Shown: piece by piece, positions 2,030 to 61,566 of the stretch
Numbering within the stretch: the stretch's first letter is position 1
How the letters are laid out: the number at the start of each line of letters is the position of its first letter
Assembly (NCBI GenBank): GCA_946965045.2
Contig: OX337238.1
Span: forward strand, 2,976,001-3,040,000
Length of the DNA: 64,000 bases
Direction: 5' to 3'
Origin: Epithemia pelagica
Lineage: Eukaryota > Protista > Bacillariophyta
The notes under the pieces: generated by a model
Database searches by the model: none
What the model was told of the DNA's origin: nothing
Seen by the model: the letters and a program-made list of their open reading frames with translations, nothing else
Program-made: the position numbers and the translations under genes

Positions 2030-3030
2030 GTTGCTGAATTTCGCGGGTCCTTTTTGGGCCACTATATAATACATGAGGATGATACCCAGCCCGAAACGCC
2101 GCCATGGAGCTCTACACCAGTCATCCTCGAACCAAACCAAAATAAAACAAAACCATGGAGCCGCATTCACAACCACCACAACCACAAGGACGAGGACTAC
2201 ACAATGCTGCTAATACAAAAGGCAGCAAGAGACTAGCATTCTACCATAACCATTGGCACTGTTTCGCAACGACTTGTTGAGTTGCGACACTGCTCGTGCC
2301 ACACAGTGAGGAGAGAACGAGCGATGATGAGGCTAATGATTGAACCATGAGCTCACAAAGAGAGAGCCAAAGTCGCTGTCTCAACGTGGAAGCTCCTAGC
2401 ATTTGTTGCATCTTTGCGTTTGCCAGTGTGGGACAACCGTGTGTGATCGATGATTGGATTGGAACCTATGGATTTGGCCCATTTCGTTGCGCATGGAGGA
2501 GGATAGAGCGTTTGGCTGTGATGCTGATGTATTGTACAAACAGCTAGAAGGAATTTGAAAAGTGCCTCAAGACTGTAACTGACAAGTACTGCTAACTTAC
2601 CAATATACAGTGGCAAAGGGGTTCCAGTGAGGCCACGCGTTCTTCGAAGTGGCAAAAGGGGTTTCAGTGAGGCCACGCGTTCTTCTAAATGGTCAGTGTA
2701 TTCGTGGAATCTCTGGATTTGTGCCGAAGCAGTTATTTTCGTGGATGGTTTTGGACCCGTTCATCTGTCCAAAGTCATCCGATCAATAAGAGAAGGATGG
2801 TTTTGGACGTGTTCATCTGTCCAAGGCCATCCATCCGAGGATATACGGCCATGATTCAAATCGCCGCGTAGAGGTGCGTCCGTCGTTGCTGCCGTCTTTG
2901 GTTCCTGCTTTGGTGTGAAACCAAAATATTCAGTCCATTTTGTTCGGAGTCCATTTTCGTATTTTTTTGAGGAGAAAGACGAAACTCTGAGGTCCATTCC
3001 TTGGTGTTGTCATAAAATCTGCAAGTACCA
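2030..3030. repeat. Segmental duplicate of ~37720-38679 (upstream flank of K1 and K7)
   Basis: Near-identical sequence; short ORF translations recur (2347-2547 and 38029-38229). Confidence 0.85.
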
Positions 3031-4199
3031 TGACGACTACACAGCAACAGCATGCAAACCAATCTGGGCTTGCCTTTCTCAACATTAATAATAACAGTAA
3101 CGAGCCACATTGGAATACCAGTGACTGGCCAACCCTTTTGGGTGGGTGGCGTTATTCGCATGCATCGGCTGTGCTCGACCATCCCGACCAGGATAACACT
3201 GCACAGACGGTTGTTGTTTTGGGAGGATACAAACAAGGTCAAGGCTTTACCAACTCAGTTCTGCTGATGAATCTGGCAGAAAAAACTAAGCAATGGCGCG
3301 AAGGACCGCCATTAAATCGCAACCGAGCCTATCATGCTGCGGTGATTTGTAACGGAGGAGTTTACGTTATCGGAGGACACAATAGAAGTTCACGTTTGGA
3401 TAGTATCGAACGGATTGATGTCGAAAATTTGTGTTCCGAATCCAAGGAAAGCTCTACCAGCAACCAATGGAAGACTGTGACTTGTCGATTATCTACGAGA
3501 AGAAATGAATGTTCGGCTGTTGTCGTGCACAATCGCTATATTGTCGTGATCGGTGGATCCAACGGAAACTTATTGTCGTCGGTTGATATAATCGATACAG
3601 CTATCGCAAGCAACCACACTGTGATTGTGGGACCATCCATGTCAGTTCCTTGTTGTGGTTGTGCAAGTGCTGTCATTGGTGATCGCATTTTTGTCGTTGG
3701 AGGCTACAATGGGCACAATGCAGAAGACATCAAATCAGTGGACTACTTGGAGATTCCTGATCCTTCAGGCAATGAGACAATGACCACAGTAGGTGCAGTG
3801 TTTCCATCTTCATGCCGTTGGACACGTCATGACCAACTCAATCTTTCCATCCAACGGTGGTTTCATGCAGTTGTAGCTGTTGGATCATGTCTGATTGTTA
3901 TGGGTGGTCGCTTAGCAGCGGACACTGCAGAAGTCTTGGATACTCGCCGAAACACACTTTCGACCTTACCCCAATTAACAGGGTCACGTTATTCATGCAG
4001 TGCTGTGGTTCACTCGAGGGGAATTGCTGTGATTAGTGGATATGACAATACTTCTTGCGCGACACTCTCCTTGGTTGACAAGAATACGTGGTGTTTTCGT
4101 CGACTCACGGAGCAGGCGCCGAGTACAATCTTTGGGTCAAGAACAGACTCACTGCGATCTTCTCCAGGGCCTACTACATCATGGAAGGAGTCCGGTTAG
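3030..4199 (+). CDS. Stand-alone Kelch-repeat beta-propeller protein K1 (389 aa)
   Basis: Six GG-containing Kelch blades (VVVLGG, VYVIGG, IVVIGG, IFVVGG, LIVMGG, IAVISG) with W/R-x-H motifs; ACCATG start; no introns. Confidence 0.9.
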   Translation: MTTTQQQHANQSGLAFLNINNNSNEPHWNTSDWPTLLGGWRYSHASAVLDHPDQDNTAQTVVVLGGYKQGQGFTNSVLLMNLAEKTKQWREGPPLNRNRAYHAAVICNGGVYVIGGHNRSSRLDSIERIDVENLCSESKESSTSNQWKTVTCRLSTRRNECSAVVVHNRYIVVIGGSNGNLLSSVDIIDTAIASNHTVIVGPSMSVPCCGCASAVIGDRIFVVGGYNGHNAEDIKSVDYLEIPDPSGNETMTTVGAVFPSSCRWTRHDQLNLSIQRWFHAVVAVGSCLIVMGGRLAADTAEVLDTRRNTLSTLPQLTGSRYSCSAVVHSRGIAVISGYDNTSCATLSLVDKNTWCFRRLTEQAPSTIFGSRTDSLRSSPGPTTSWKESG

Positions 4200-4759
4200 C
4201 GCCGTAAGAAGAAGTTATCAACTGGGAAAACTGAGACGTAAAAAGTGTTAATTGAGAAATATAAATACTATGATTTAAACTCAGTCATTTACCAACATTC
4301 TGGGAGAAATGCACTCCACGTTGTGTAACACAAACGTGCGAAAGCAAACATAGTTCTAGAGAGCTCACTTCAAGCAATCACTTCGTGATGTTGCTACGAT
4401 CCTGTGGCACAAGGAACGATCTGCTTTGTTGGACCCACTGCATTGAAGTGCATTGCAGAAGTCCCCGGAAAAGATTTTGTGCGTCCGGTCGGTTCTTCTC
4501 TAGATCTGATGCGTGTCCGCAGGTTTTGTGGAGGCCACTGTTCGACGCCCCACTTCGCCCGGCGTTGCGCCCGGGACGCGCCTGCGGATTCGCGCCATAA
4601 TTTTTTAAAATCCACGTTGTCATTGACAATGGGAAATGGGAGTGACAAAATGCCGTTCCGCTGTGGATTTGGCCATTGCAGCAATCTGTTTTGGATATCG
4701 TGTACGGGACGAGAAACTTGTTATGCAAGCCAGCAACAAGACGATCTGGAAGTGCTCTT

Positions 4760-5360
4760 AAATGGCCTCAAAGACTGAAAGGACAAATCAACTAACCAAG
4801 GTAGTAATAGGGAGACCACAATGGCGACAAGCCATGGGCAAGAAAACTCCAGCAGCAAAAGAAGGTCGTAACCACATAAAGGCCCAATTGAACATTCTCC
4901 TACGCCAGCACGACACCCTCTCCCGAATGATCAGGCTGCAGCAGTATAAACTGTTATCGGTCCATCTCCATCTCCTCTCACTTTCATCAGTTGGCATCTG
5001 ATGATGAATCCTGATCCATATCCTTTTCGTCTCTTGTTGGCAGAATCATCACCATCACAATGAACGAGACGGCCCACACATTTCGCACACGTACGTTTCC
5101 AGAGTGTTTGTGTCAAGGATGATGCTAATGACAATCCAGAATCCAGACACTTTCAAGGACCCACGACCAGGAGGACACTGCTACTGTCAAGCAAATGAGC
5201 CACAACCAGCCAGCATCACACATACCGCGGTTCCGGAACGAGGCGTGCTGCTGGAATGAGGGCGAGACCTCTCTTGTGTCATAGGAGTGCGGGTGAGAAC
5301 AATCGATTGTTAGAATAGGTTGGATAGATGCACTGCCGAGATTGTATTCACTTCTCCTAC
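4760..5360 (-). pseudogene. Degraded C-terminal (TM-region) relic of the low-complexity membrane-anchored family
   Basis: Minus frame QHASFRNRGMCDAGWLWLICLTVAV loosely aligns to KDASLERNSQWKSAVLVMLLWLVVVV of the intact gene. Related blocks at ~37100-37700, ~40920-41300, ~46380-47300 and ~58860-59500. Confidence 0.45.
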
Positions 5361-5533
5361 CAATGCTCCTTGTGCGACACTCTCCTTGGTTGACAAGAGT
5401 ACATGGTGTTTTTGCCAAGTATAATCGTTGGGTCAAGAACAGACTCACTGCGATCTACTCCAGGGCGTACTGCAACATGGAAGGAGTCTCATGAGCGCCC
5501 TAAGAAGAAGTCATCATCTGGCATAACTGAGAC
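5361..5533 (+). pseudogene. Solo 3' fragment of a Kelch gene with a small internal deletion
   Basis: CAATGCTCCTTGTGCGACACTCTCCTTGGTTGACAAG...GAGCGCCCTAAGAAGAAG matches K-gene 3' ends. The conserved 3' flank continues to ~5660. Confidence 0.85.
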
Positions 5534-5961
5534 GAGGAAAATGTCAATTGAGCAGTATAAATAGTAGGAGTGAAACGCAGTCATGACAATGAGGGTTCGA
5601 ACTGCTTTTGCTGTCAAGTGCATTTACAAACATGCTGGGAGAAATGTATTTTCCATAATGACTGGAACGTTCCATTTGCCAAACTTACGACAATGCGGCT
5701 ACAAAGGAACACGAAACCAGCAGCACAATTGACCAACAGCCCAACGAGCATACCGCTTTTGGGAGAAGGAAAAGGCGTTTGGCTGCGATGCTGGTGTATT
5801 GTGCAAAACAGCCAGAAGGAATCTGAAGCTTGGCCTGACTGGAACCCTTTTGCCACCGTATCATTGGAAGTGTTCGTCCGTTGCAGTCTTGAGGCCCTTT
5901 CCCCTCGAAATGGGATTGTCGGCGATCTTTGGTTTTGTGCGGGGGTGGCTTTTTCTTTCGT

Positions 5962-6084
5962 GGATGGTTTTGGACCCGTTCATCTGTCCAAGGCCATCCA
6001 TCCGAGAATGCAATGATTGAAATCGCCACCGTGGAGGTGCGTCCGTCGTTGCTGCTGTCTTTCGTTCCGGTTTTGGTGTATTAA
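5962..6084 (+). promoter_or_regulatory. Kelch leader: 14-bp hairpin (5962-5999) plus 23-codon uORF (6013-6084)
   Basis: GGATGGTTTTGGAC-10 nt-GTCCAAGGCCATCC; uORF MIEIATVEVRPSLLLSFVPVLVY*. Confidence 0.5.
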
Positions 6085-6182
6085 AAAAAATATTCAGTCC
6101 ATCTCGTTCGGAGTCCATTTTCGTATTGTTTTGAAGAGAAAGACGAAGGTCTGAGGTCAATTCCTGCGAGTTTGCAAGTACT

Positions 6183-7393
6183 ATGACGATGGAACTGCAA
6201 CAGCAAGCAAAGCAATCTGGGCTTGCCTTTTTGGACAGTGACAATGACAGTCTTACGCCTCATTGGAATACCAATGACTGGCCTGCCCTTTTAGGTGGGT
6301 GGCGTGAGTATCATGCTTCAGTCGTGCTCGACCATCCCGAACCGGATGACAGGGCACAGACGGTTGTTGTTTTGGGAGGGAAGAAAAAAATCAAGGGTTG
6401 ACCAACTCAGTTCAGCTGATGAATTTGGCAGAAGAAAATAAGCAATGGCGGGAAGGACCGCCGTTGAACAGCAACCGAGCCTATCATGCTGCGGTGGTTT
6501 GTAGTGGAGGAGTTTACGTGATAGGAGGAGACAGTGGAAGTTCACGCTTGGATAGTATCGAACGGATTGATGTTCAAAAGTTGTATTCCGAATCCATGGA
6601 AAGTTCTACCAGCAACCAATGGACGACTCTGACTTGTCGATTGTTGACGGCAAGAGATGAATGTTCGGCTGTTGTCGTGCACAATCGCTATTTTGTCGTG
6701 ATCGGTGGATCCAACGGAAACTTTTTGTCGTCGGTTGATATAATCGATACAGCTGCGCCAAGCAACCACACTGTGATTGTGGGACCATCCATGACAGTTC
6801 CTCGTTGTGGTTGTGCAAGTGCTGTCATTGGTGATCGCATTTTTGTTGTTGGAGGCTGCAATGGGCACTCTGGAGAAGATCTCAAATCAGTGGAGTACTT
6901 GGAGATTCATGAACCTCCAGGCAATGAGACAATGACCACAGCAGGTGCAGTGTTTCCATCCTCATGCCGTTGGACACGTCATGACCAGCTTGAGCTTTGC
7001 ATGTCACGCTGTCAGCATGCAGTTGTAGCTGTAGGATCATGTCTGATTGTTATGGGAGGCTACTTTGGCGTGGACACTGCAGAAGTCTTGGATACTCGCC
7101 GAAACGCTGTGTGGACCTTTCCCCAATTATCAGGGCCGCGTTATATCTCCGATGCAGTGGTTCACTCGAGGGGAATTGCTGTGATTAGTGGAGATGACAA
7201 TGCTTCTTGTGCGACACTATCGTTGTTTGACAAGAATTCGTGGTATTTTTGTCGACTCAGTGAGCAGCCGCCGAGTACAATCTTTGGGACCAGAACAGAC
7301 TCACTGCGATCTGCTCTGGAAGCTACTACAGTATTGAAGGAGTCTGGTGAGCGCCCTAAGAAGATGTTATCAACTGGCAAAACTGAAACGTAG
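6183..7393 (+). pseudogene. Kelch paralogue K2, 1-nt frameshift at ~6385-6400
   Basis: ORFs 6183-6401 and 6398-7393 join into a full-length Kelch protein. One base is missing in an A7 run relative to paralogues, so this may be a sequencing error. Confidence 0.8.
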
Positions 7394-7399
7394 AAAGTG

Positions 7400-9765: not shown

Positions 9766-10938
9766 ATGACGACAACACTGCATCAGCAAGCACAACAATC
9801 TGGGCTTGCCTTTCTCGAAATTCATCATAACAGTAACGAGCCACATTGGAATGTCAATGACTGGCCTCCCGTTTTGGGTGGATGGCGTGTTCGGCATGCA
9901 TCGGTTGTGCTCGACCATCCGGAACAGGAAGGCAATGCACAGACGGTTGTAGTACTGGGAGGAAAACAATGTCCAGACTACACCAACTCAGTTCTGCTGA
10001 TGAATTTGGCACAAGAAACTAGGCGATGGCGTGAAGGACCTCCGTTGAACAACAACAGAGCCTATCATGCTGCGGTGGTTTGTCGCGGAGGAGTTTACGT
10101 GATTGGAGGAGACAATGGAAGCTCAGACTTGGATTGTATCGAGCGGATTGATGTTGGAAATTTGTGTTCACAATCAATGGAAAGCGCTCCCAGCAACCAA
10201 TGGACGACCCTGACTTGTCGATTGTCTACGTCGAGAAAAGGATGTACGGCTGTTGCCGTTCACAATCGCTATATTGTCGTCATTGGTGGATCCAACGGAT
10301 GCCTTTTGTCGTCGGTTGATATAATCGATACAGCCATCACAAGCAACCACACCGTGATTGTGGGACCATCCATGACAGTTCCTCGGTCTGGTTCTGCAAG
10401 TGCTGTCATTGGTGATCGCATTTTTGTTGTTGGAGGCCTCACTGGGTATAATTTAGAAGATCTCAAATCAGTGGAGTACGTGGAGATTCCTGATCCTTCA
10501 GGCAATGAGACAATGGCCACAGCAGGTGCAGCGTTTCCATCCTCATTTCGTTGGACACTTCATCACAAGCTCAAGCTTTCCATCCTCCCGACTAGACATG
10601 CAGTTGTAGCTGTTGGATCATGTCTGATTGTTATGGGAGGTTCTGTTGATGTCTTGGATACTCGACGAAACACAGTGTGGACCTTTCCCCCATCAACAGG
10701 TTACCGTTGTGCCTACAGTGCTGTGGTTCACTCGAGGGGAATAGCTGTGATTGGTGGAAATGGCAATGCTGCTTGTGCGACACTCTCCTTGGTTGACAAG
10801 AATACGTGGTGTTTTCGTCGACTCATTGAGCAGGTGCCGAGTACAATCTTTGGGACAAGAACAAACTCACTTCCATCTGCTCCGAAACGCACTACACCAT
10901 CGAACGAGCTAACCAGAGATGAAGACAATGTCAATTGA
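9766..10938 (+). CDS. Kelch paralogue K3 (390 aa; open in frame upstream to 9562)
   Basis: Six Kelch blades; ACCATG at 9766 is homologous to the other K starts. Confidence 0.9.
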   Translation: MTTTLHQQAQQSGLAFLEIHHNSNEPHWNVNDWPPVLGGWRVRHASVVLDHPEQEGNAQTVVVLGGKQCPDYTNSVLLMNLAQETRRWREGPPLNNNRAYHAAVVCRGGVYVIGGDNGSSDLDCIERIDVGNLCSQSMESAPSNQWTTLTCRLSTSRKGCTAVAVHNRYIVVIGGSNGCLLSSVDIIDTAITSNHTVIVGPSMTVPRSGSASAVIGDRIFVVGGLTGYNLEDLKSVEYVEIPDPSGNETMATAGAAFPSSFRWTLHHKLKLSILPTRHAVVAVGSCLIVMGGSVDVLDTRRNTVWTFPPSTGYRCAYSAVVHSRGIAVIGGNGNAACATLSLVDKNTWCFRRLIEQVPSTIFGTRTNSLPSAPKRTTPSNELTRDEDNVN

Positions 10939-11199
10939 GACATAAAAATACCAGGAGTATGACGCAGTCATGAGAATGAGAGTTCGAAGTGCTTGCTGTT
11001 CTTCCTGAGAAGAAGACGCGTTTACAAACATGCTGGGAGTGTACGTTGTGTAACACAAACGAACGACAGCAAACATATAGTTAGAACTCACCTCAAGTAA
11101 TCACTTTGTGTTGTTGGTACGATCTTTTGTAGCACAAGGAACGATTCATGTGGGCTGGTCATAGCACAAGTGGAAGAAAAAACAGTCGGTCTACTCTTG

Positions 11200-17614: not shown

Positions 17615-18542
17615 ATGACACTCATGACACTGCAAGAACAAGCATGGCAGTCGGGCCTTGTCCTTTCGGACAACATGGACCATAACAGTGATGTATCACA
17701 GTGGAACTTGAACGACTGGCCTCCCCTTTTGGGTGGGTACCGTTTCAATCATGCATCGGTGGTGCTAGACCATCCCGAAAAGGATGGCAGTGCACAGACG
17801 GTTGTAGTTTTGGGAGGAGACATACTATGTGGTTTCGACACCACCATCTCAGTGTTGTTGTTGAGTTTGGCAGAAGAAAACAAGCAGTGGCGGGAAGGAC
17901 CGCCATTGAGCGACAAGAGAGGTTTACATGCTGCGGTGGTTTGTAACGGAGGAGTTTATGTGATTGGAGGACACAATGAAAGTTCACGCTTGGATAGTAT
18001 CGAACGGATTGATGTTGAAAAACTGTTGCAAACGTACTCGACGAGCACTACGGGGAACCATTGGACCATTTTGAATTGTCGATTATCTACCCCCAAAACT
18101 GCATGTTCGGCTGTTGCCGTGCAAAATCGATACACTGTCATCATGGGTGGAGGCCACGAGGAGACGAGTTTGTCATCAGTTGATATTGTAGATACGGCTT
18201 CTACAAAGCAACCACCCTGTCATGGTGGGACCGTCCATGACAATACCTCGGGAACGGTTCGGAAGTGCTGTCATTGGTGATCGCATCTTTGTTGTTGGAG
18301 GTTACAACAAGAGTGATGAACTAGATCTGACATCAGTGGAGTACTTGGAGTTCCAGAAGTCATCTGCGATTGAAACAACAAAGACTGCAGCAGAAGTCTT
18401 CCCCCCATCTTGCGCTTGGATAACTCTCGCGGACATCAAGCTTTCCGCACCAAGGCAAAATCGTGTGGTATCTCTGGGATCACGTTTAGCTCCTGGACGT
18501 GCAAAGACAAATTCATGCAATGATAACAGGAACGAGAATTGA
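17615..18542 (+). pseudogene. Divergent Kelch paralogue K4, frameshifted (~18205) and lacking most of the last two blades
   Basis: Blades 1-3 in ORF 17438-18280, blade 4 in 18222-18542. +1 base in TCTACAAAGCAAC; homology ends near LSAPRQNRVVSLGS. Confidence 0.8.
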
Positions 18543-23801: not shown

Positions 23802-25013
23802 ATGGCGATGACACTGCAACAGCAAGCAAAGCAATCCGGGCTTTGCTTTCTGGACGTTGACAATAATAGTGAGGCACCGCAATGGAATACCAATGACTGG
23901 CCTCCCCTTTTGTGTGGATGGCGTTGTTTGCATGCATCGGTTGTGCTCAACCATCCCGAACAGGATAACAATGCACAGACGGTTGTTGTTTTGGGAGGAT
24001 ACAAACAAAATCAAGGCTTGACCAACTCAGTTCTGCTGATGAATCTGGCAGAAAAAACTAAGCAATGGCGGGAAGGACCGCCGTTAAACAGCAACCGAGC
24101 CTATCATGCTGCGGTGATTTGTAGTGGAGGAGTTTACGTGCTCGGAGGACACAACGGAAGTTCACGATTGAATAAAATCGAACGGATTGATGTTGCAAAT
24201 TTGTGTTCCGAATCAATGGAAAGCTCTACCAGCAACCAATGGACGACCCTGACTTGTCGATTGTCTACGAGAAGAAATGGATGTTCGGCTGTTGCCGTGC
24301 ACAATCGCTATATTGTCGTCATGGGTGGATACAGCGGAAACGATCTGTCGTCGGTTGATATAATCGATACAGCTATCGCAAGCAACCACACTGTGATTGT
24401 GGGACCATCCATGACAGTTGCGCGGTCTGGATGTGCTAGTGCTGTCAGTGGCCACTGCATCTTTGTTGTTGGAGGCGAAATTGGGCACAATGGAGAAGAT
24501 CTGGACTCAGTAGAGTATTTGGAGATTCATGATCCTTCAGGCAATGAGACAATGAACACATCAAGTACAGTGTTTCCATCCTCATGCCGCTGGAAACGTC
24601 ATGACAAGCTCAATCTTTCCATCGGACGGAATAGTCATGCAGTTGTAACTGTTGGAACATGTCTGATTGTTATGGGAGGTTTCTCAGCCCCGGACACTGT
24701 TGATGTCTTGGATACTCGCCGAAACACTATGTGGACCTTTCCACGATCAACAGGGCCGCGTTATCTCTCCACTGCTGTGGTTCACTCGAGGGGAATTGCT
24801 GTGATAAGTGGAGATGACAATGCTTCTTGTGCGACACTCTCCTTGGTTGACAAGAATACGTGGTGTTTTCGTCGACTCATTGAGCAGGTGCCGAGTACAA
24901 TCTTTGAGACAAAAACAGACTCACTGCGATTTACTCCAGGGCATACTACAGCATTGAAGGAGTCCGGTGAGCGCCCTAAGAAGAAGTTATTAACTGGCAA
25001 ATCTGAGACGTAG
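23802..25013 (+). CDS. Kelch paralogue K5 (403 aa; open upstream to 23586)
   Basis: Six Kelch blades; basic tail ERPKKKL. Confidence 0.9.
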   Translation: MAMTLQQQAKQSGLCFLDVDNNSEAPQWNTNDWPPLLCGWRCLHASVVLNHPEQDNNAQTVVVLGGYKQNQGLTNSVLLMNLAEKTKQWREGPPLNSNRAYHAAVICSGGVYVLGGHNGSSRLNKIERIDVANLCSESMESSTSNQWTTLTCRLSTRRNGCSAVAVHNRYIVVMGGYSGNDLSSVDIIDTAIASNHTVIVGPSMTVARSGCASAVSGHCIFVVGGEIGHNGEDLDSVEYLEIHDPSGNETMNTSSTVFPSSCRWKRHDKLNLSIGRNSHAVVTVGTCLIVMGGFSAPDTVDVLDTRRNTMWTFPRSTGPRYLSTAVVHSRGIAVISGDDNASCATLSLVDKNTWCFRRLIEQVPSTIFETKTDSLRFTPGHTTALKESGERPKKKLLTGKSET

Positions 25014-34122: not shown

Positions 34123-34242
34123 GGATGGTTTTGGACCCGTTCATCTGTCCAATGCCATCCATCCGAGGATACCATGATTGAAATCGCCACCGTGGAGATG
34201 CGTCCGTCGTTGCTGCCGTCTTTCGTTCCGGTTTTGGTGTAA
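34123..34242 (+). promoter_or_regulatory. Kelch leader: hairpin plus 22-codon uORF (34174-34242)
   Basis: ACCATG context; MIEIATVEMRPSLLPSFVPVLV*. A second, degenerate hairpin lies at 34067-34104. Confidence 0.5.
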
Positions 34243-34356
34243 AAGGTTCAAAATATTCAGTCCATATCGTTCGGAGTCCATTTTCGTATTTTTTCGAGGA
34301 GAAAGACGAAGCTCTAAGGTCCATTTCTTGGTGTTGTCATAAAATCTCAAAGTACC

Positions 34357-37491: not shown

Positions 37492-37525
<34 letters not shown>

Positions 37526-38678: not shown

Positions 38679-39896
38679 ATGACGACTACACAGCAACAGC
38701 ATGCAAACCAATCTGGGCTTGCCTTTCTCGACATTAATAATAACAGTAACGAGCCACATTGGAATACCAGTGACTGGCCAACCCTTTTGGGTGGGTGGCG
38801 TCGGTGGCATGCATCGGCTGTGCTCGACCATCCCGACCAGGATAACACTGCACAGACGGTTGTTGTTTTGGGAGGATACAAACAAAATCAAGGCTTGACC
38901 AACTCAGTTCTGCTGATGAATCTGGCAGAAAAAACTAAGCAATGGCGCGAAGGACCGCCATTAAACCGCAACCGAGCCTATCATGCTGCGGTGATTTGTA
39001 ACGGAGGAGTTTACGTTATCGGAGGACACAATGGAAGATCATGTTTGGAAAGTATCGAACGGATTGATGTTCAAAATTTGTGTTCCGAATCAATGAAAGG
39101 CTCTACCAGCAACCAATGGACGACACTGACTTGTCGATTGTCTACGGCAAGAGATGAATGTTCGGCTGTTGCCGTGCACAATCGCTATATTGTCGTGATT
39201 GGTGGAAACAACAACGGAAAGTATTTGTCATCGGTTGATGTAATTGATACAGCTGTGAGAAGCAGCCATACAGTGACTGTGGGACCATCCATGTCAGTTC
39301 CTCGGTCTTGTTGTGCTAGCGCTGTCATTGGTAATCGCATTTTTGTTGTTGGAGGCTACAATGGGCACAATAGACAAGAAGGTCTCAAGTCAGTGGAGTA
39401 TTTGGAAATGTATGATCCTTCAGGCATTGAGACAATGAACACAGCAAATGCAGTGTTTTCATCCTCATATCGTTGGACACGTCATGACAAGCTCAATCTT
39501 TCCAGCCGACGGCGAGATCATGGAGTTGTAGCTGTTGGATCATGTCTGATTGTTGTGGGAGGTTTCTTAGCCCCGGAGACTGTTGAAGTCTTGGATACTC
39601 GCCGAAATTCTGTGTGGACCTTTCCCTGATCAACAGGGCCAGATAATGGGTATAGTGCTATGGTTCACTCGAGGGAAATAGCTGGGATTGGTGGAAGTGA
39701 CAATGCTCCTTGTGCGACACTCTCCTTGGTTGACAAGAATACGTGGTGTTTTCGTCGACTGATTGAGCAGGTGCCGAGTAGAATCTTTGGGACAAGGACA
39801 AACTCACCTGGGTCTTCCCCGGAACATACTACAGCATGGAAGGAGTCTCATGAGCTCCCTAATGAGAAGTTATCATCTGGCAAAACTGAGGCGTAA
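38679..39896 (+). pseudogene. Kelch paralogue K7 with an in-frame TGA at 39627-39629 before blade 6
   Basis: TTTCCC-TGA-TCAACAGGG where paralogues have CGA/CAA/CCA. The frame continues to 39896. Confidence 0.85.
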
Positions 39897-42120: not shown

Positions 42121-42343
42121 AAGGTCCAGAATATTCCGTCCATCCGTTGATTCCTCGTCCGGACCGCCGTTCGATATCAAGGCCGGCGCCACACCGTGTT
42201 ATTTTCTGGGATTTGCGGTTTTGAGAAGCCGTTCGTCATCCAAGGCCACGTTATCGTATATTCTGGGGATTTGAGGAGAAAGACGAAGCTCTGAGGTTCA
42301 TTCCTCGGTATTGCCATCAAATCTGCAGCTTCGGTTTGGTACC

Positions 42344-43555
42344 ATGACGACACTGCAACAGCGAGCACAGCAATCCGGGCTTGTCTTTGTTGACAGTGAC
42401 AATATTAGTGATGCGCCACAATGGAATGTCAATGACTGGCCTCCCCTTTTAGGTGGGTGGCGTTGGTGGAATGCATCGGTTGTGCTCGACCATCCCGAAC
42501 AGGATGACAGGGCACAGACGATTGCAGTTTTGGGAGGACGCAAACAAGATCGACGCTACACCAACTCAGTGTTGTTGTTGAGTTTGGGAGATGAAAACAA
42601 GCAATGGCGGGAAGGACCGCCACTGAACGACAACCGAGCCGATCATGCTGCGGTGGTTTGTCGCGGAGGAGTTTACGTGATCGGAGGATGCAACCGAAGT
42701 TCAGACTTGGATACTGTCGAATTGATTGATGTTCAAAACTTGTGTTCAGGGGCGGCGGTACGCACCACCAGCAACCAATGGACAACCTTGAATTGTCGAC
42801 TGACTATGGGAAGAAAAGGATTTTCGGCCGTTACGGTGTACAATCGTTATATCGTCGTCATGGGTGGATGCTGCAACGGAAACTATTTGTCGTCGGCTGA
42901 TATAATCGATACAGCTATCGCAAGCAACCACACTGCGATTGTGGGACAATCCATGACAGTTCCTCGTTGTGGTTGCGCAAGTGCTGTCATTGGTGATCGC
43001 ATTTTTGTTGTTGGAGGCTACAATGGGCACAATGCAGAAGACATCAAATCAGTGGAGTATTTGGAAATGCATGATCCATCCGGCAATGAGACAATGAACA
43101 CAGCAAGTGCAGTGTTTCCATCCTCATGCTGTTGGACACGTCATGACAAGCTCAATCTCTCCATCCGACGGAGTGATCATGCAGTTGTAGCTGTTGGATC
43201 ATGTCTTATTGTTATGGGAGGTCGCTTAGCCGTGGACAGTGTTGAAGTCTTGGATACTCGCCGAAACACTATGTGGACCTTTCCACTATCAACAGGGCAC
43301 AGTTTTGGCTGTAGTGCTGTGGTTCACTCGAGGGGAATTGCTGTGATTAGTGGAGCTGACAATGCTTCTTGTGCGACACTATCGTTGAGTGACAAGAATA
43401 CGTGGTGTTTTCGTCGACTCACTGAGCAGGTGCCGAGTGCAACCTTTGGGTCAAGAACAGACTCACTGCGATCTGCTCCGGAACCTGCTACAGTATTGAA
43501 GAAGTCTGGCGAGCGCCCCAAGAGGAAGTTATCAACAAACAAAATCGAGACATAA
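42344..43555 (+). CDS. Kelch paralogue K8 (403 aa)
   Basis: Six Kelch blades; ACCATG at 42344. Confidence 0.9.
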   Translation: MTTLQQRAQQSGLVFVDSDNISDAPQWNVNDWPPLLGGWRWWNASVVLDHPEQDDRAQTIAVLGGRKQDRRYTNSVLLLSLGDENKQWREGPPLNDNRADHAAVVCRGGVYVIGGCNRSSDLDTVELIDVQNLCSGAAVRTTSNQWTTLNCRLTMGRKGFSAVTVYNRYIVVMGGCCNGNYLSSADIIDTAIASNHTAIVGQSMTVPRCGCASAVIGDRIFVVGGYNGHNAEDIKSVEYLEMHDPSGNETMNTASAVFPSSCCWTRHDKLNLSIRRSDHAVVAVGSCLIVMGGRLAVDSVEVLDTRRNTMWTFPLSTGHSFGCSAVVHSRGIAVISGADNASCATLSLSDKNTWCFRRLTEQVPSATFGSRTDSLRSAPEPATVLKKSGERPKRKLSTNKIET

Positions 43556-46014: not shown

Positions 46015-47838
46015 CTCCCGATCGTACCCTCTCCAAAAACTCCTCTTTTTTTCTTCTCAGCTTTTCCTCTGCGTTTTTCTTTTCTGGCAGAGGCTCATTC
46101 TCTTGCCCTTCTTTGGTATATCTACTCTCTCATGCTCTTCGTTTTCAATGATGATGAATGAAAACCGGTGGTCTCTGTTCATTTTGTTCATCGGTTGGAG
46201 GATTCCCGAGTCCCCAGTCCCCAGGTACTTTCGAGCCCATACTCCAAAGTCGATCCATCCGATCCCGTCTCAGATGCCCGCGCGACCACAAAAAAGTTCC
46301 CCCCAGCACCTGCAACCCCCCCCCACTAAACGGGGCATAGCAGGAGTAGCTAGACTAACATTACTCTATTAGCTCTAGGTAGTAGGAGTAGGAGTAGCAA
46401 CAAAAGAAGCCAAAAGATCCATAGATGTGCTTCTTTTCAAACGAACCACACAATGATAAAACGACAACACTAACGACGGCCCACACATTGGCTCATTGCC
46501 AGTGTTTGTGTCAAGGATAATGCCGGCAATCCAGAAGCCAGACAAACTACAATACAACTCGGTGACCCACCACAACCGTAATAACAACCAGGACAAGGAC
46601 GATGCTGCTTCCAAGCAAATGAGCCAATACAAACGCACTCTATACCATCATCCTTACTAAGACCAACACGACGAGAATGATTCCGCGGTTCCAAACTAAG
46701 GCGTGCTGCTCGAATGCCGACATTTTTCTCGTGTCACATGATGAATGTGGATGACAACAAATCGATTGCCGGTTGGATAATATAGAGTCACCACCGAGGT
46801 TGTATTCCCTCCTTCTCCGACAACATGGGTGGACCTCAAGTGCCAGACGGTTTGTTTCCAAAAGTGAGAGGCGTGCTGCTGGAAGTGCGAGACGAGACCT
46901 CGCCGTGGCACCCACACAGTGCTTGCTGAACTATACTGTCAGATCCAACGAGAACGTGTATCGAAGTTTGCGAATCGTCCAAGTTCACAGCCACAATTGT
47001 GTTGTTGTTGCTGGTGGTAAATGACGAGGTATAAAGGTAGAACCATACCAGACGGCAAAGGAGGAGAACCAGCCGGATTTAAAAAGCTGTCGTTGTCTTT
47101 GTTAAATCCGTCGTCTTTGCAGAATTCCGAGGGTCCTTTCTGGCCCATATAGAATGCGTGAGGAAGAAACCTAGCCCGAAAAAACACCCATCAATCCTCG
47201 AAATAATCACCACAGCAGCAGTCACAACCACAACAACGAAGATTGATGTGATTGCTTCTACTGATCCTCTGCTCCAGTACAAAAAGTCCAATTGAATCAT
47301 TCAATTTCCGGAAGAATCGTTCCAAGTAAAGTATGGAGGGTTTGGAATGGAATCCATTTCTCCTCAGAGTTGTGATATTGTGGTGAGTATTCGAAGAATT
47401 GACCATTGACCATGCATGGCTGTGTGACAGACTGAGCTCCCGGCCGCTCGTTGGAAACGAAGAAAGGAGAATGTAATGCCCATTCAAATGAGACTTGCTT
47501 TCTTTGTGCTTGTTGTTGTCGGTACCTACGTTGGAGTTGGTACAAGAGTTGTGTAAATGCCCTCAAGACTGCAACGGACAAACAGTACTACCGATACAGT
47601 GACAAAACGGTTCCAGTGAGGCCAAGCCCACGAAATGGGATTGTCAGCGTTTGTGGAATCTCTGGGATGGTGCGAGGGTGGCTTTTGTCTTGGTGGACCC
47701 TCAAAGGATGAAGGATACAATGATTGAAATCGCGCCGTAGAGGTCCGTCCGTCGTTGCCGCCGTCTTTCCTTCCGGTTTTGGTGTGAAAGGTCATCACGT
47801 TCGGAGTCCATTTTTTAGTGTTGGAAAGTACCACGACG

Positions 47839-49044
47839 ATGACACTGCAACAGCAAGCAAAGCAATCCGGGTTTTGCTTTCTGGACATCGACAATTATAG
47901 TTAGGCGCCGCAATGGAATACCAATGACTGGCCTCCCCTTTTGGGCGGGTGGCGTTATTCGCATGCATCGGTTGTGCTCAATCATCCCGAACAGGATAAC
48001 AATGCACAGACGGTTGTTGTTTTGGGAGGAAACAAACAAAATCAAGGCTTCACCAACTCAGTTCTGCTATTGCATTTGACAGAAGAAAACAAGTATTGGC
48101 GGGAAGGACCGTCTTTGAACGACAAGAGACGCTCACATGCTGCGGTGGTTTGTAGCGGAGGAGTTTACGTGCTCGGAGGACACAACGGAAGTTCACGATT
48201 GGATAAAATCGAACGGATTGATGTTGCAAATTTGTGTTCACAATCAATTGAAAGCTCTACCAGCAACCAATGGACGACCCTGACTTGTCGATTGTCCACG
48301 AGATGTAATGGATGTTCGGCTGTTGCCGTGCACAATCGCTATATTGTGGTGATCGGTGGATCCAATAGAGACCCTTTGTCGACGGTTGACATAATCGATA
48401 CAGCTGTGCCAAGCAACCACGCTGTTATTGCAGGGCCATCGATGACAGTTCCTCGTTGTGGTTGTGCAAGTGCTGTCATTGGTGATCGCATTTTTGCTGT
48501 CGGGGGCGACAATTGGCACAATGAAGAAGTGCTCCAATCAGTGGAGTATTTGGAGATTCCTGATCCTTCAGGCAATGAGACACTGAACACAGCAAGTGCA
48601 GTGTTTCCATCCTCACGCCGTTGGACGAGTCACAACGAGGTCAATCTTTCCATCAATCGGTGTTTTCATGCAATTGTAGCTGTTGGATCATGTCTTATTG
48701 TGATGGGAGGTATCTTCGCCCCGGAGACTGTTGAAGTCTTGGATTCTCGACGAAACACGTTGTGGACCTTTCCCCAATTAACAGGGTCACGTTTTTCATG
48801 CACTGCTGTGGTTCACTCGAATGGAATTGCAGTGATTGGTGGAAGTGACAATGCTTCTTGTGCGACACTATCGTTGAGTGATAAGAATACGTGGTGTTTT
48901 CGTCGACTCACTGAGCAGGTGCCGAGTACAATCTTTGGGACCAAAACAGACGCACTGCCATCTGCTCTGGAAGCAACTACAGCATTGAAGGAGTGTTATG
49001 AGCGCCCTAAGAAGATGTTATCAACTGGCAAAACTGAGACGTAA
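47839..49044 (+). pseudogene. Kelch paralogue K9 with a nonsense codon (GAG>TAG, 47902-47904)
   Basis: First ATG mutated to ACG (47833); TAG at codon 22 from the ATG at 47839; rest of the frame open; upstream hairpin deleted. Confidence 0.85.
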
Positions 49045-51146: not shown

Positions 51147-52361
51147 ATGATGACAACACTGAAACAGCAAGCAGAACAATCCGGGCTTTGCTTTCTGGAC
51201 ATCGACAATTATAGTGAGGCGCCGCAATTGAATACCAATGACTGGCCTCCCCTTTTGGGTGGGTGGCGTTATTCGCATGCATCGGTTGTGCTCAATCATC
51301 CCGAACAGGATAACAATGCACAGACGGTTGTTGTTTTGGGAGGAAACAAACAAAATCAAGGCTTCACCAACTCAGTTCTGCTATTGCATTTGACAGAAGA
51401 AAACAAGTATTGGCGGGAAGGACCGCCGTTGAACAACAACCGAGGCAGTCATGCTGCAGTGGTTTGTCGCGGAGGAGTTTACGTGATCGGAGGATGCAAT
51501 CGAAGTTCATGCTTGGATAGTATCGAACGGATTGATGTTCAAAAGTTGTGTTCAGGGACAGCGGTACGCACCACCAGCAACCAATGGACAACCTTGAATT
51601 GTCGATTGTCCACGGCAAGAGATGGATGTTCGGCCGTTACTATCTACAATCGTTATATTGTCGTCATTGGTGGATGCAATCGAATCGGATACAATTTTTC
51701 GACGGTTGATATAATCGATACAGCTGTGCTAAGCAACCACACTGTGATTGTGGGACCACCCATGACAGTTCCTCGGTGTGGTTGTGCTAGTGCTGTCATT
51801 GGTAATCGTATTTTTGCTGTTGGAGGCCACAATGGAGCAGATATCGAGTCAGTAGAGTATTTGGAAATGCATGATCCTTCAGGCATTGAGACAATGGACA
51901 CAGCAAGTGCAGTGTTTCCATCCTCATGCCGTTGGACAGTTCATGGCCAACTCAATCTTTCCATGCGACGGAATCATCATGCAGTTGTAGCTGTTGGATC
52001 ATGTCTGATTGTGATGGGAGGTTCCTTAGTAGCGGACACTGTTGAAGTCTTGGATACTCGACGAAACACTGTGTGGAGCTATCCCCGATCATCAGGGCTG
52101 CGTTGTATCTTCAGGAGCGCTGTGGTTCACTCGAGGGGAATTGCTGTGATTAGTGGATATGACAGTCCTTCTTGTGCGACACTCTCCTTGGTTGACAAGA
52201 ATACGTGGTGTTTTCGTCGACTCACTGAGCAGGTGCCAAGAAGTATAATCTTTGGGACAAGAACAGACGGACTGGAATCTAGTCCAGGGCCTACTTTAGC
52301 ATTGAAGGAGTCTGGTGAGCGCTCTGAGAAGAAGTTATCAACAAGCATAATCGAGACATAG
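51147..52361 (+). CDS. Kelch paralogue K10 (404 aa)
   Basis: Six Kelch blades; intact ORF. Confidence 0.9.
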   Translation: MMTTLKQQAEQSGLCFLDIDNYSEAPQLNTNDWPPLLGGWRYSHASVVLNHPEQDNNAQTVVVLGGNKQNQGFTNSVLLLHLTEENKYWREGPPLNNNRGSHAAVVCRGGVYVIGGCNRSSCLDSIERIDVQKLCSGTAVRTTSNQWTTLNCRLSTARDGCSAVTIYNRYIVVIGGCNRIGYNFSTVDIIDTAVLSNHTVIVGPPMTVPRCGCASAVIGNRIFAVGGHNGADIESVEYLEMHDPSGIETMDTASAVFPSSCRWTVHGQLNLSMRRNHHAVVAVGSCLIVMGGSLVADTVEVLDTRRNTVWSYPRSSGLRCIFRSAVVHSRGIAVISGYDSPSCATLSLVDKNTWCFRRLTEQVPRSIIFGTRTDGLESSPGPTLALKESGERSEKKLSTSIIET

Positions 52362-52747: not shown

Positions 52748-54277
52748 TTATACAAAAAGTTCCATGTACGGGTGCATGTCGAGCATGCGATTCGGATCTT
52801 GTGCGGTTTGTGGTTGCAGCAGGAATACGGGACGTTGGTAGTACGACGATTGGGTCGTCCATTGCAACAAGCACGCAAAGAGTTGGGATAGTTGATCCGT
52901 CAAACCAAGGCAATGGCAAACCTTGTTGGATTGCACTCGTGTGGTTCGACTACTGGTGACACCACCACCCACAAGGATGAGTCCATGGTCCTTGAGGTAT
53001 ACCATGCCACATCCTTGTCGGGGGACCCGCAGTTGTGGTGCCGTCCACACTTGGTTTCGTTTCGTATCCCAAATTTGGATCCGATTCGATTCCTGGTCGC
53101 CACTCCATGCGCCTCCTGCCATGACCAAACAGCATCCTACTCGTACAACGGTAGCATTGCATCGATTCGCCATTCTTGTTTGGAGAACCAGGTCTGTCTG
53201 CTTGTTGTGCTGGATCCACGAGGAGGAACTGGAAAAGGTTGGCATTATGGATGGAGTACTGAGAAATCGAATACTCGTTTTCGTCGCTTTCGTACTGCTT
53301 GCAAGTAGGTTCGTTCGTTTCCTCTTTTTGCTTGACAAGTGCAGGGGTTGCGTAAAAGAAGAAGGAGGTGTTACAACCAGGGGGTCGGTCAGTTGCAGCG
53401 ATTACATGAAATTTTCTCCCACAACGTAAATCTGACGACCAACCGTAGCAATCCCACAACCAATGGGAGGCACATTCAAAAAGGGTCCAGCATACAGGAT
53501 TGGGCCATTGTTGTTGTTGTTGTTGTTGTTGCTGCTGCTGCAGGTATCAATCACATGGACCGACACCAGCCAGTCCCCTACAATGACAATGTACCGATCC
53601 TGAACGACGGTTGCCGCACATGCTGCTCGGGCAATGGGCAAGCGACAAAAGCGAGTCCATGCTGCTGTGGTGTTGGTGTGGTTGGTTTGTTCTTGTTCCG
53701 CGGTCGAGGAGGGAACGTTGGTGTCTTGTCGTCGTTCCAACATGGACCACAAGGAAGTGATTTTGTGTCGTTCCACGCAATGCAGACTCAAGTTCCGGTG
53801 GTTTTGTCCCCCAATGGTGTACACATGGTCCTTGCAAACTACAGAGGCATGATGTTTCCGAGCCATGTCCATACGGGGACCACGTTGCCAATTCGTTTGT
53901 CCTGGTGTCCACATTAGGACGGAATTGGTGGTGAGGGTTTGTCGAGTGGGATGTACCACACCTCCCACAATCAGTATCATGGACTTGATGTCTTGGTCTT
54001 TTGATTTTGATGCCTCCTCTTCTTGCCCTGGTCCTGAGGAAGAAGTCGGATTCAAAGGCTGTGGAAGAACCACCGAGGCATGATACATTCTGCTCCTTGG
54101 CAAAGGTGGCACTGGACCAGTCTTCCATTCTGGACAGTCACTGTCAAATCGTAGTCCAGAGCTGCGTGCTTCCTCTTGTATGGTCTTGATGCTCCATGGG
54201 TTGTTGGGAGTTTCTTCCTCCAGGAACCGTGGACCTGTCGAGGAACGGTTCATGTTCGTTTGCAGTAGTGTCGTCAT
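52748..54277 (-). pseudogene. Divergent Kelch-repeat gene with one in-frame TAA (53402-53404)
   Basis: SRMYHASVV, ILIVGG, WQRGPRMDMARKHHASVVC..HVYTIGG, VVQDRYIVIVG, IYVVG. After the stop the same frame gives VGCCLVMAGG, IWDTKRNQVW and LILVGGG. Confidence 0.75.
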
Positions 54278-55012
54278 TGTTTTGTGACTGCTACTACTGC
54301 GCAAGTATCACCAGAACGACAAGGGAGACGAAGAGTGCTGTGATGCTTGTCGGGAGAGTTCCAGAAAAGGTCATTGCGAGGAGACAGGAATCGTCGCCAT
54401 GGATATGAAAATGGATGAGCACAGTAGAGATAAAACGGTGACTGACTGTGTGACCGTCAAAAATGGAAGAGAACTCTCGCCTGGCGCGGGAACGCCGGCA
54501 CTGTGGACTCTTGGAAGGACTCAGATAGGAACTGACAGAAAGTAATCAGAGTAGGTAGTACTCCTCAAGCTGCTCCTAGGTAGGCAAAGGAAGAAATTCA
54601 AGGTCCACGGCCTGTAGACGAATCCAAAGTCTTTACACCTGTCATGTATCGCTTTGCACCGACTGTAGCAAAAGTAGTTAGCCCTGTGGTCCCCATGGTT
54701 CGCCCCATCATGAATCCAACCTACCGAATCCATGTTGCAACCGAATCATTGAAACCTAGTGATACGGCATTCATCAAGCGGTTGTGCGTGTCGAATGGTA
54801 CCCAAGGCAAAGATGGCCACACTTGCATCACACTACAACTGGTGCCAACAACAAACGCATCGAACAAGTCTCATTTGAATGAGTCTATTATACTTTGGTA
54901 TTTTCACGGCTCTCTTGGTTTACAACGAACGGCTCTGTCGCAGCACAGACATGGATGGTCACTCGAATACCAATATCGGGATCCAAAGAAGAAGAGGATT
55001 CCTTTTGATACC

Positions 55013-59188: not shown

Positions 59189-59189
<1 letters not shown>

Positions 59190-59267
<78 letters not shown>
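59190..59267. repeat. (TC)n microsatellite, ~39 units
   Basis: Seen directly; a shorter (TC)n lies at ~37495-37521. Confidence 0.95.
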
Positions 59268-59270
<3 letters not shown>

Positions 59271-60432
59271 TATTCTCCGACAACACAATGTGGACATGTA
59301 GAGTACAAGCCAATTTGTTCTCACGAAGAAAAAAGGGTCCATCACCGGCGGTATTCATTAATATTATTGTCGAATTTTTCTCCAAGTCGGCTGCCTGAGA
59401 CATGCGTACGAGACGGCATAGGAGAATGTGATGATTTGTGTACCACAAATTTTCGGCAGTACACAACCACCCCCAAACTCTATGATGAGAATGCCCTTTT
59501 CCCCTCCAATACTCCACAATGAACGACCAGGAGTTGCGGAACAAGAGGTGATGAACATTCGAGTGGTTCTGCACAGCTCAGGGACGACTGGACACGTCAT
59601 GGGGAGAGTCATGCCTGTGATTGTCCACGTTACTGGAGGAAACCATGAAAAAGAAGGACACTATAAAATATGAGACACTCACACCCATGACGTGTATGTG
59701 ATTGCTTCAAAAACCAGCCAAATGAAATCATTTCATCTCCTGAAGAATCGTTTCGAGTGAATGTAGTAAGGGTTTGGAATAAAATCCATTTCTCCTCAGA
59801 GTTGCGATAGTGTGAGAGAGTCAGTGACCATGCATGTCTATCCGCTCTTTGGAAACCAAGAAGGGGGTTATGTACTACCCATTCAAATGAGACTCGTTTC
59901 CTCTGTGCTTGTTCTTGTCGGTACCTACGTTGGAGTTGGTACAAGTGTCACAAACGCTCTTGTTTGAAATTCGGCAGAGTTTTGGGTGCAATGTCACTCT
60001 CGGGTTTCTTCTCTATGAGATCCATATTCCATTGTCTTTCAACAGTGAGACGGTGCAAGAAAAGACTGTTTGGTTGCGATGCTGATGTAGGTTGCAAAAC
60101 AGCCAGAAGGAATCTGAAAAGGGCCTCGCGACTGCAACAAACAAACACTACTACCGATACAGTGATCGATGGTTTTGGACCCATTCATCGGTCCAAGGTC
60201 ATCCAAGGATACCGTGATTGAAATCGCCACCGTGGAGGTCCGTCCGTTGTTTCTGCCCTCTTTCGTTCCGGTTTTGGTGTGCAAGGTCCATAATATTCAG
60301 TCCATCCGTTGATTCCTCGTCTATGCGTCTTTCAAGGCCTGCGGAGTCAACAACAGGGGTTTTGCGGTTTTGGGGGAAAAGACGAAGCTCTGAGGTCTAT
60401 TCCGTGTTGTTGTCATAAAATCTGAAAGTACC

Positions 60433-61566
60433 ATGACGACTACACTGCAAGAGCAAGCAAAGCAATCCGGGTTTTGCTTTCTGGACAGTGACAATAACAG
60501 TCTTGCGCCTCATTGGAATACCAATGACTGGCCTCGTCTTTTAGGTGGGTGGCGTCAGTATCATGCTTCAGTCGTGCTCGACCATCCCGAAAAAGACATT
60601 GCACAGACCGTTGTAGTTTTGGGAGGACGCAAACAAAATCAAGGTTATACCAACTCAGTGGTGTTGTTGAGATTGTCAGATGAAAATACGCAGTGGCAGG
60701 AAGGACCGCCACTGAACGACAAGCGAGCCTTTCATGCTGCGGTGGTTTGTAACGGAGGAGTTTATGTGATTGGAGGATGGAATGGAAGTTCACAGTTGGA
60801 TAGTATCGAACGGATTGATGTTGCAAAGCAGTGTTCGGAACCAATGGAAAGCTCTACCAGCAACCAATGGACGACACTGACTTGTCGATTGTCTACGGCA
60901 AGAAATGGATGTTCGGCTGTTACCGTGTACAATCGCTATATTGTCGTCATTGGTGGATCCAACGAAAACTGTTTGTCGTCGGTTGATATAATCGATACAG
61001 CTATCGCAAGCAACCACACTGTGATTGTGGGACCATCCATGACAGTTCCTCGGTCTGGTTCTGCAAGTGCTGTCATTGGTCATCGCATTTTTGCTGTTGG
61101 AGGCTACAATGGGCACAATGAAGAAGTTCTCAAATCAGTGGAATATTTGGAGATTCATGATCCTTCAGGCAATGGGACAATGAACACATCAAGTTCAGTG
61201 TTTCCATCCTTATGCCGTTGGACACGTGATGACAAGCTCAATCTTTCCATCCAACGGAGTTATCATGGAGTTGTAGCTGTTGGATCCTGTCTGATTGTTA
61301 TGGGAGGTTGCAATCTCAGAGCTCAGGAGAATGCAGAAGTCTTGGATACTTGCCGAAATACTGTATGGACCAATCCCCAATTCACAGAGTTACGTTTTGC
61401 CCGTAGTGCTGTGGTTCACAAGAAGGGAATCGCAGTGATTGGTCGACTCGACAATTCTTCTTGTGAGACACTTTCGGTGATTGACAAGAATACTTGGTGT
61501 TTTCGTCGACTCACTGAGCAGGTGCCAAGTACAATCTTTGGGACAAGAACAGACGCACTGCGATAA
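60433..61566 (+). CDS. Kelch paralogue K11 (377 aa), C-terminal basic tail lost
   Basis: Six blades intact; stop after TDALR. The conserved family 3' flank is absent. Confidence 0.88.
   Translation: MTTTLQEQAKQSGFCFLDSDNNSLAPHWNTNDWPRLLGGWRQYHASVVLDHPEKDIAQTVVVLGGRKQNQGYTNSVVLLRLSDENTQWQEGPPLNDKRAFHAAVVCNGGVYVIGGWNGSSQLDSIERIDVAKQCSEPMESSTSNQWTTLTCRLSTARNGCSAVTVYNRYIVVIGGSNENCLSSVDIIDTAIASNHTVIVGPSMTVPRSGSASAVIGHRIFAVGGYNGHNEEVLKSVEYLEIHDPSGNGTMNTSSSVFPSLCRWTRDDKLNLSIQRSYHGVVAVGSCLIVMGGCNLRAQENAEVLDTCRNTVWTNPQFTELRFARSAVVHKKGIAVIGRLDNSSCETLSVIDKNTWCFRRLTEQVPSTIFGTRTDALR

Follow-up and report, generated by a model that had tools for sequence, protein, structure and literature searches.

Stand-alone Kelch propellers arrayed in a diatom genome: a conserved scaffold and a fast-evolving top face

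What is a run of Kelch genes doing in a diatom, when its members share one frame and differ most in a few loops? The 64,000-nucleotide (nt) stretch of the Epithemia pelagica contig OX337238.1 analysed here (assembly GCA_946965045.2, positions 2,976,001 to 3,040,000, forward strand; hereafter the window) holds such a run, and a first-pass annotation made from the letters alone had read it as eleven co-oriented, intronless paralogues forming a diversifying recognition repertoire. We found that the strand scaffold and a C-terminal motif of the encoded proteins are held by purifying selection, and that a ring of residues in the top-face DA and BC loops of the propeller evolves more rapidly than synonymous sites do. 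The family expands and contracts through tandem and segmental duplication, decay into pseudogenes and gene conversion over short tracts. Taking these results together, we put at roughly 0.7 the probability that the array is a diversifying repertoire of binding modules that track changing ligands.

A tblastn search with copy K06 (34357-35565) as query recovered eleven K06-like copies (K01 to K11; Table 1), all on the forward strand between 3030 and 61566, a density of 11 copies in 58 kb. The number, shared orientation and lack of introns claimed by the annotation therefore stood, with continuous open reading frames (ORFs) in the copies and introns not required; the working set had been overstated, as a three-frame reading of each copy showed four of the eleven (K02, K04, K07 and K09) to be broken. 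Only K05, K06, K08 and K10 were fully intact, at 403-404 amino acids (aa), and K01, K03 and K11 kept the propeller and the conserved motif with the basic tail lost or changed. In K01, homology ran on to 4238, beyond the early stop, and a Cys stood in place of the blade-4 Arg. Window copies showed 11-20% mutual nucleotide difference, and their flanks and spacers differed. The repeated unit began some 230-330 nt before the ATG and ended 50-300 nt beyond the stop; it comprised only a leader, the coding sequence (CDS) and a short 3' flank.

Fold, variable positions and constant parts

A Pfam scan of the copies returned Kelch_1 (PF01344) with scores of 94-112 bits, where the cut-off is 20.1; Kelch_6 and Kelch_2 likewise exceeded their own cut-offs, and PF24681 (KLHDC2/KLHL20/DRC7 Kelch) was the top match. 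An AlphaFold2 (AF2) model, built from a family alignment of 83 members (A1), gave a six-blade propeller over residues 28-352 with 23 strands in blade order (mean predicted local distance difference test, pLDDT, 80.8; predicted template modelling score, pTM, 0.82), together with an N-terminal helix at residues 2-11 and a disordered tail at 354-403. The best natural matches in Foldseek were the Kelch domains of KLHL12, KEAP1 and NS1-BP, with target-normalised template modelling (TM) scores of 0.76-0.83, and a profile search of PDB sequences concurred. In K06 numbering, GG doublets at 65-66, 115-116, 175-176, 224-225 and 292-293 (with SG at 336-337) and blade-start Arg residues at 41, 99, 158, 208, 276 and 320 were invariant or nearly so across the 83 members. 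Each GG ends a strand B in the model and each conserved Arg precedes a strand A, so that the positions following Arg belong to the inter-blade DA loops and those following GG to the BC loops. In standard propeller topology, DA and BC loops lie on the top face and AB and CD loops on the bottom. Kelch domains have their substrate pocket on the upper face, where DA and BC loops give it its shape (Canning et al., PMC3597819), and with KLHL12 and KEAP1 as the closest folds, the annotation's equation of the variable loops with the ligand-binding face of Keap1/KLHL proteins held good.

On the predicted structure, top-face loops held 28 of the 30 positions that varied most across the 83-member protein alignment. 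The first-pass annotation had placed the variation after each blade-start Arg and after each GG, which proved right in part: GG+1, GG+4/+5 and the Arg+1/+2 pairs of blades 1, 5 and 6 were variable, whereas GG+2/+3 were mostly conserved (e.g. K68-Q69, N118-G119 and N178-G179), and among close copies the Arg+1/+2 pairs of blades 2-4 varied far less. Every blade-1 and blade-5 string that it had quoted was present in the copies. The strongest hypervariable codons of K06 were 42-43 (34480-34485), 117 (34705-34707), 181 (34897-34899), 275-278 (35179-35190), 294-298 (35236-35250), 319-322 (35311-35322) and 338-339 (35368-35373). Top-face signatures were all different in the 25 copies compared, and the selected top-face positions were rich in Tyr, Phe and Asp.

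As the annotation had stated, the propeller carries no attached BTB, BACK or F-box: Pfam found no domain other than Kelch in any copy. BTB had no match in any copy, and the N-terminal 45 aa were without a Pfam match even at E = 10. A BACK domain with 3-box likewise had no Pfam match, and only 35 residues precede the propeller. For the F-box there was no Pfam match, and an LPxE-type pattern occurred in 0 of 25 copies. The C-terminal 64 aa gave no Pfam match at E = 10, and no copy's tail contained the BC-box/Cul2-box pattern [STPA]L...[CSA]...[AILV], a pattern that a diverged box would escape.

Every copy, those with altered tails included, contained the tail motif DKNTWCFRRL(I/T)EQVPSTIFG (residues 351-365), at which ω, the ratio of nonsynonymous to synonymous rates (dN/dS), was 0.1-0.5. 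In K02 and in three copies outside the window (L2c, L3a and L4c), WYFCRL replaced WCFRRL (K06 residues 355-357), with the Cys shifted by two positions; this may be a compensated change within the motif. Most copies ended with a basic ERPKKKLSTGKTET segment resembling a nuclear localisation signal, and a PKKK-type tail of this kind may direct the proteins to the nucleus. No signal peptide or membrane segment was seen by inspection, which argues that the proteins are intracellular.

Selection, gene conversion and recent divergence

Selection was evaluated at a set of positions defined a priori, comprising Arg+1, Arg+2 and GG+1 to GG+4 of each blade (36 residues). The tree-free estimate was obtained by pairwise maximum likelihood (ML) under the MG94xHKY model (F3x4), a single distance being fitted to each pair. 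At the a-priori positions, ω was 2.25 (bootstrap confidence interval, CI, 1.80-2.75) in the 22 copies with intact propellers, 2.25 (CI 1.80-3.00) in the 15 copies outside the window, and 2.0 (CI 1.5-3.0) in the 7 window copies. Elsewhere, pairwise ML gave 0.6 for other top-loop residues, 0.6-0.8 for bottom loops and 0.4 for strands. Since the bottom loops stay below 1, the top-face excess is not simply that of unconstrained loops. The first-pass annotation had named variation spread evenly over the propeller, together with loop dN/dS at or below 1, as an outcome that would undo its proposal; what we found was variation concentrated on one face and an ω above 1 at the a-priori loop positions, and the combination of conserved scaffold and diversifying top face recurred in the 15 copies beyond the window. 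The NG86 estimate at the same positions was 1.79 (CI 1.12-3.26), and about 1.8 without indel-adjacent columns. Gene-wide ω from codon alignments was 0.66-0.73, a high value given the dozens of scaffold residues that are invariant in this protein.

Nine independent sister pairs gave a nonsynonymous to synonymous ratio of 96:18 at the a-priori positions versus 292:166 elsewhere (p = 1e-5), and versus 79:32 in bottom loops (p = 0.014). The sister-pair analysis used a position set in which blade 6 was represented by R320/Y321 instead of Y321/S322; ω under this set was 2.03 and 2.13.

Tree-based analyses pointed the same way. A random-effects likelihood-ratio test (LRT) against any distribution of ω not exceeding 1 gave a doubled log-likelihood difference (2ΔlnL) of 274 with a single tree and 227 with six segment trees, and the fit placed about 20% of sites at ω > 1 and about 4% at 5-7. 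Selected sites were enriched in top loops (22 of 113 versus 11 of 252; odds ratio 5.3, p = 1e-5). Thirty-one sites were concordant between the tree-free estimate and the segment-tree posterior; 22 of them lay in top loops, all six blades being represented, and the concordant sites were strongest in blades 1, 5 and 6.

A four-gamete, PHI-like test detected recombination (p <= 0.001), and incompatibility climbed over about 100-300 nt, which indicates short-tract gene conversion. Null simulations without recombination yielded 2ΔlnL of 0-2 and zero false sites, and those in which data evolved along the six segment trees were analysed on one tree yielded 11-55 and 0-84 false sites. Because recombination alone can generate high 2ΔlnL values and false sites, the single-tree FUBAR-like site analysis and the single-tree LRT are used as supporting evidence only; as the simulated values reached only 11-55, the global signal lies well beyond a recombination artefact. 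The class-level selection result is independent of trees.

A close counterpart allowed the process to be viewed over a short interval. Window positions 2026-8506 were collinear with a locus on another contig (L004, on ctg1253l) at 97.8% identity. Non-coding flanks differed by 0.85% and the K02 CDS by 0.5%, and the K01 CDS differed by 3.6% (Poisson P = 4e-15). Between K01 and its counterpart there were 29 nonsynonymous and 7 synonymous codon changes, some of them confined to one copy and others in short runs matching paralogue codon states (codons 42-43 and 274-278), and synonymous divergence exceeded that of the flanks (P = 0.013). Such a picture is what point substitution together with small conversion patches on the coding sequence would give. 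The counterpart of K02 on ctg1253l (L4c) was 99.5% identical and intact, so the frameshift that breaks K02 must be very recent.

Spread of the family, possible roles and flanking sequence

The family extends well beyond the window. A word-indexed search gave at least 600 matches, and the family numbers at least 120 distinct clusters (90% identity); the best 120 all had E < 1e-108 and were ENA proteins on large contigs. An exhaustive search of representatives at 50% identity gave 147 matches at E <= 1e-30, about 100 of which were full-length stand-alone relatives, down to about 35% identity; 19 of 20 such representatives were ENA-only. All traced members, bar one distant relative, belonged to ENA assembly ERZ21939226, on many contigs. 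P0264, a 408-aa stand-alone Kelch protein 31% identical to K06, had the same N-terminal layout and a different C-terminus, and was located on transcript-sized contigs (L008-L013) from six SRA runs (SRR30635575, SRR30635582 and SRR31008970-73). The window corresponds to about 947,935-1,011,934 of ctg1337l (K06 at 982,291-983,502), where two loci with more Kelch arrays (L002 and L003) were situated 100-220 kb upstream; one contig alone has Kelch arrays over at least 285 kb, and many contigs carry them. The 15 copies outside the window came from four loci (L001-L004), and all 15 had open frames, which suggests functional constraint. L001 was 97.5% identical to the window around K02 and about 92% over the ADH-K06 block; that it might be a simple haplotig of the window was ruled out, as it is a mosaic with fewer Kelch copies between. 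Our literature searches brought up no account of this family or of any Kelch repertoire in diatoms.

Diversifying selection on this family is well supported. In a repertoire of this kind, each copy would serve as a module for binding, with a specificity set by its own top face, and the proteins would act within the cell, possibly in the nucleus, with the variable face joined to a constant handle. The constant motif and the N-terminal helix would probably dock all copies onto one shared partner. The driver might be changing ligands, in genetic conflict with viruses, parasites or mobile elements, or self/non-self recognition.

Several points weigh against this account. The repertoire is known here from its genes, with both targets and partner putative, and the tail motif, whose role as a shared handle we purely infer, matched no Pfam family, BC-box or F-box and was left disordered by AF2. 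The top and bottom classes combine the strand order that DSSP gives for a predicted model with the usual propeller topology, and measured coordinates do not enter into them. The CIs of the pairwise ML estimates resample sites only, and the pairs share history; the sister pairs gave a top-face ω of 1.31, which alone is not significantly above 1. Gene conversion inflates tree-based tests, making individual site calls uncertain. With 4 of the 11 window copies dead and bottom loops at 0.6-0.8, constraint is loose overall.

A narrower version of the repertoire, to which we give tentative credence at most, is an innate-immune-like intracellular system in a diatom, with hundreds of stand-alone Kelch propellers whose short constant C-terminal motif might lead to a shared effector, for example through an undescribed ubiquitin-ligase docking. 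Here point substitution and short-tract gene conversion would diversify the substrate-binding face.

Selection might also be real and arise from conflict within the genome or species, over mating or self/non-self, over mobile-element silencing or pairing, or as part of a drive system or one of toxin-antidote type. We regard this as unlikely, as no link was found between the Kelch genes and any mobile-element protein, even though the arrays sit amid repeated segments with a low-complexity ORF family, ADH fragments and a Copia-type reverse transcriptase gene nearby. The near-confinement of traced members to one assembly would suit such a system, but the repeated unit holds no gene besides Kelch and no consistently paired intact partner gene was found, the low-complexity (916-aa) family being mostly fragmentary beside Kelch copies.

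Somewhat less probable again is relaxed constraint alone, in which redundant loops drift at ω of about 1 and gene conversion shuffles the variants with no adaptive value. The observed LRT value is about 4-5 times the largest in the recombination simulations, in which gene conversion, a real process here, by itself took 2ΔlnL as high as 55 and gave as many as 84 false sites. Pseudogenes, the gene-wide ω of 0.73 and the sister-pair value would all fit drift, but the tree-free ω of 2.0-2.25, with CIs above 1.5, was obtained in three data sets by estimates that recombination cannot bias, the bottom loops stay at 0.6-0.8 while equally exposed, and all 15 copies from beyond the window keep their frames open. 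That haplotigs or mis-assembly inflate copy number and variability is very improbable, since near-identical blocks on a second contig (the L004 and L4c matches above) and many clusters of exactly two members stand against eleven copies on one contig that differ by 11-20% in nucleotide sequence and have distinct flanks and spacers, and haplotigs could not give rise to the family, only reduce its true count by half at the most.

The 5' leader repeats ahead of every copy and contains two short conserved upstream ORFs (uORFs), MVLDPFICPRPSIR and MIEIAAVEVRPSLLPSFVPVLV. The motif of the first uORF was duplicated in K01, K06 and K07, and in K03 (from 9562) and K05 (from 23631) the second uORF runs on into the main ORF without a change of frame. 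A hidden extra exon or domain in this conserved upstream DNA was ruled out, as only the two short uORFs are there.

Other features of the window are listed in Table 1. Fragments containing only ADH_Fe_C lay beside Kelch copies elsewhere (L001 4473-5105 and L003 5383-6015), and this recurrence suggests that pieces of the AdhE-like gene were carried along by the segmental duplications. The 916-aa low-complexity ORF family is arranged tail-to-tail with many Kelch copies and is fast-evolving: its members have poly-Q/E/S/N runs and a hydrophobic C-terminal segment, full-length copies are just 56-72% identical, and neither Pfam nor PDB gave a match. A BTB-like fold was considered for the paralogous ORF pair on the reverse strand and was unsupported, as Pfam returned nothing and the AF2 model was unusable (pLDDT 34.5). 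Between K04 and K05, a 591-aa ORF (19820-21595, forward strand) had a weak arrestin C-terminal match (PF02752, 29.5 bits, cut-off 27.7), and a dinucleotide microsatellite of about 80 nt (59187-59270) lay upstream of K11.

Table 1. Kelch copies and neighbouring features; positions are those of the window unless a locus is named
Feature	Position	Strand	Remarks
K01	3030..4199	+	Intact propeller; stop at 4197-4199 cuts last 14 codons (basic tail)
Kelch C-terminal fragment	5344..5534	+	Residues ~334-403, in two frames (tblastn)
K02	6183..7393	+	Pseudogene; 1-nt deletion near codon 68
K03	9766..10938	+	Intact propeller; 8-nt deletion gives a different C-terminal tail
K04	17630..18488	+	Old decayed copy; several frameshifts, truncated after ~residue 288
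K05	23802..25013	+	Intact, 403 aa
K06 5' leader	34029..34356	+	Conserved; uORFs at 34069-34113 and 34174-34242
K06	34357..35568	+	Intact 403-aa reference copy
K07	38679..39893	+	Pseudogene or truncated copy; stop at codon 317 (39627-39629), before blade 6
K08	42341..43555	+	Intact, 404 aa
K09	47836..49044	+	Pseudogene; full length apart from an in-frame stop near codon 25 (47902-47904)
K10	51147..52361	+	Intact, 404 aa
K11	60433..61566	+	Intact propeller and conserved motif; homology stops at residue 376, basic tail missing
Diverged Kelch gene	52862..54304	-	~28% identity to K06, two ORFs; distant relative outside the close array
Weaker Kelch-like match	56913-57746	-	tblastn; strand opposite to the array
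AdhE-like gene	26523-29337	+	Aldehyde dehydrogenase and Fe-alcohol dehydrogenase; at least 3 ORFs
916-aa ORF	30293-33043	-	Window copy
916-aa ORF fragments	3-521, 11239-12675, 35883-36374, 43886-44369		In the window
916-aa ORF elsewhere	L001 5889-8657; L002 6514-8706		
Paralogous ORF pair	55013-55954 and 61906-62778	-	67% identical; 5-member family ending PGPPPSKKAKS

Comparison with known systems

The array proteins share with the KLHL adaptors of cullin-RING ligase 3 (CRL3), such as KLHL12, KEAP1 and KLHL20, the six-blade Kelch domain, the GG doublet and the blade-start Arg, and the positions that vary here fall in the very loops, DA and BC, that give the substrate pocket of those adaptors its shape (PMC3597819). 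Unlike them, they are without BTB, BACK and 3-box, and so have no recognised link to Cul3; the array protein, free-standing and 400 aa long, has an N-terminal helix and a C-terminal motif of its own. The KLHL genes persist as single-copy orthologues and are conserved, whereas the array family is massively amplified and diversifying. The CRL2 receptors KLHDC2, KLHDC3 and KLHDC10 also combine a Kelch domain lacking BTB with a short C-terminal segment, which in those proteins serves for docking, but the array tails are without the BC-box/Cul2-box pattern, and KLHDC2-type receptors are neither amplified nor hypervariable. Lacking the docking domains that define them, the array proteins fall outside the BTB-Kelch, F-box-Kelch and KLHDC2-type families.

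The nematode F-box and MATH-BTB families and the plant F-box-Kelch families (e.g. PMC8120010) resemble the array in their lineage-specific tandem expansion, birth-and-death evolution and many pseudogenes, and in positive selection on the substrate-binding domain with the rest conserved. Expanded and positively selected families of ubiquitin-ligase adapters were reportedly described by Thomas in 2006. The nematode and plant adapters differ in having a recognisable F-box or BTB, whereas here only a short helix and a motif of 15-20 aa are constant. An anti-pathogen role has been proposed for these adapter families.

In the repeat domains of fungal NLRs (WD40, ANK and TPR; PMC12222747), a hypervariable binding face is likewise set on a propeller or repeat scaffold and is subject to recombination or conversion. 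There, the variable module is fused to NACHT or NB-ARC and effector domains, and the diversity lies between repeats within one gene; in the array family, the units are whole stand-alone genes with no signalling domain.

The Kelch array thus combines a lineage-specific tandem expansion with pseudogenes and dN/dS > 1 confined to the predicted ligand-binding surface. Its evolutionary signature is that of known recognition repertoires, set on a scaffold and architecture (a stand-alone Kelch domain with no ligase-docking domain) not described in that role. To our knowledge, the intracellular recognition of viruses, parasites and foreign DNA in diatoms, which are major primary producers, is almost uncharted. 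The window offers a concrete candidate, with variable residues mapped and intact and broken copies side by side, and the constant motif suggests itself as bait for the shared partner. Should the targets prove to be pathogen proteins, a major algal lineage would be seen to possess immune receptors of a new type; if not, the family would still stand as a clear example, from a protist, of gene conversion driving adaptive diversification.

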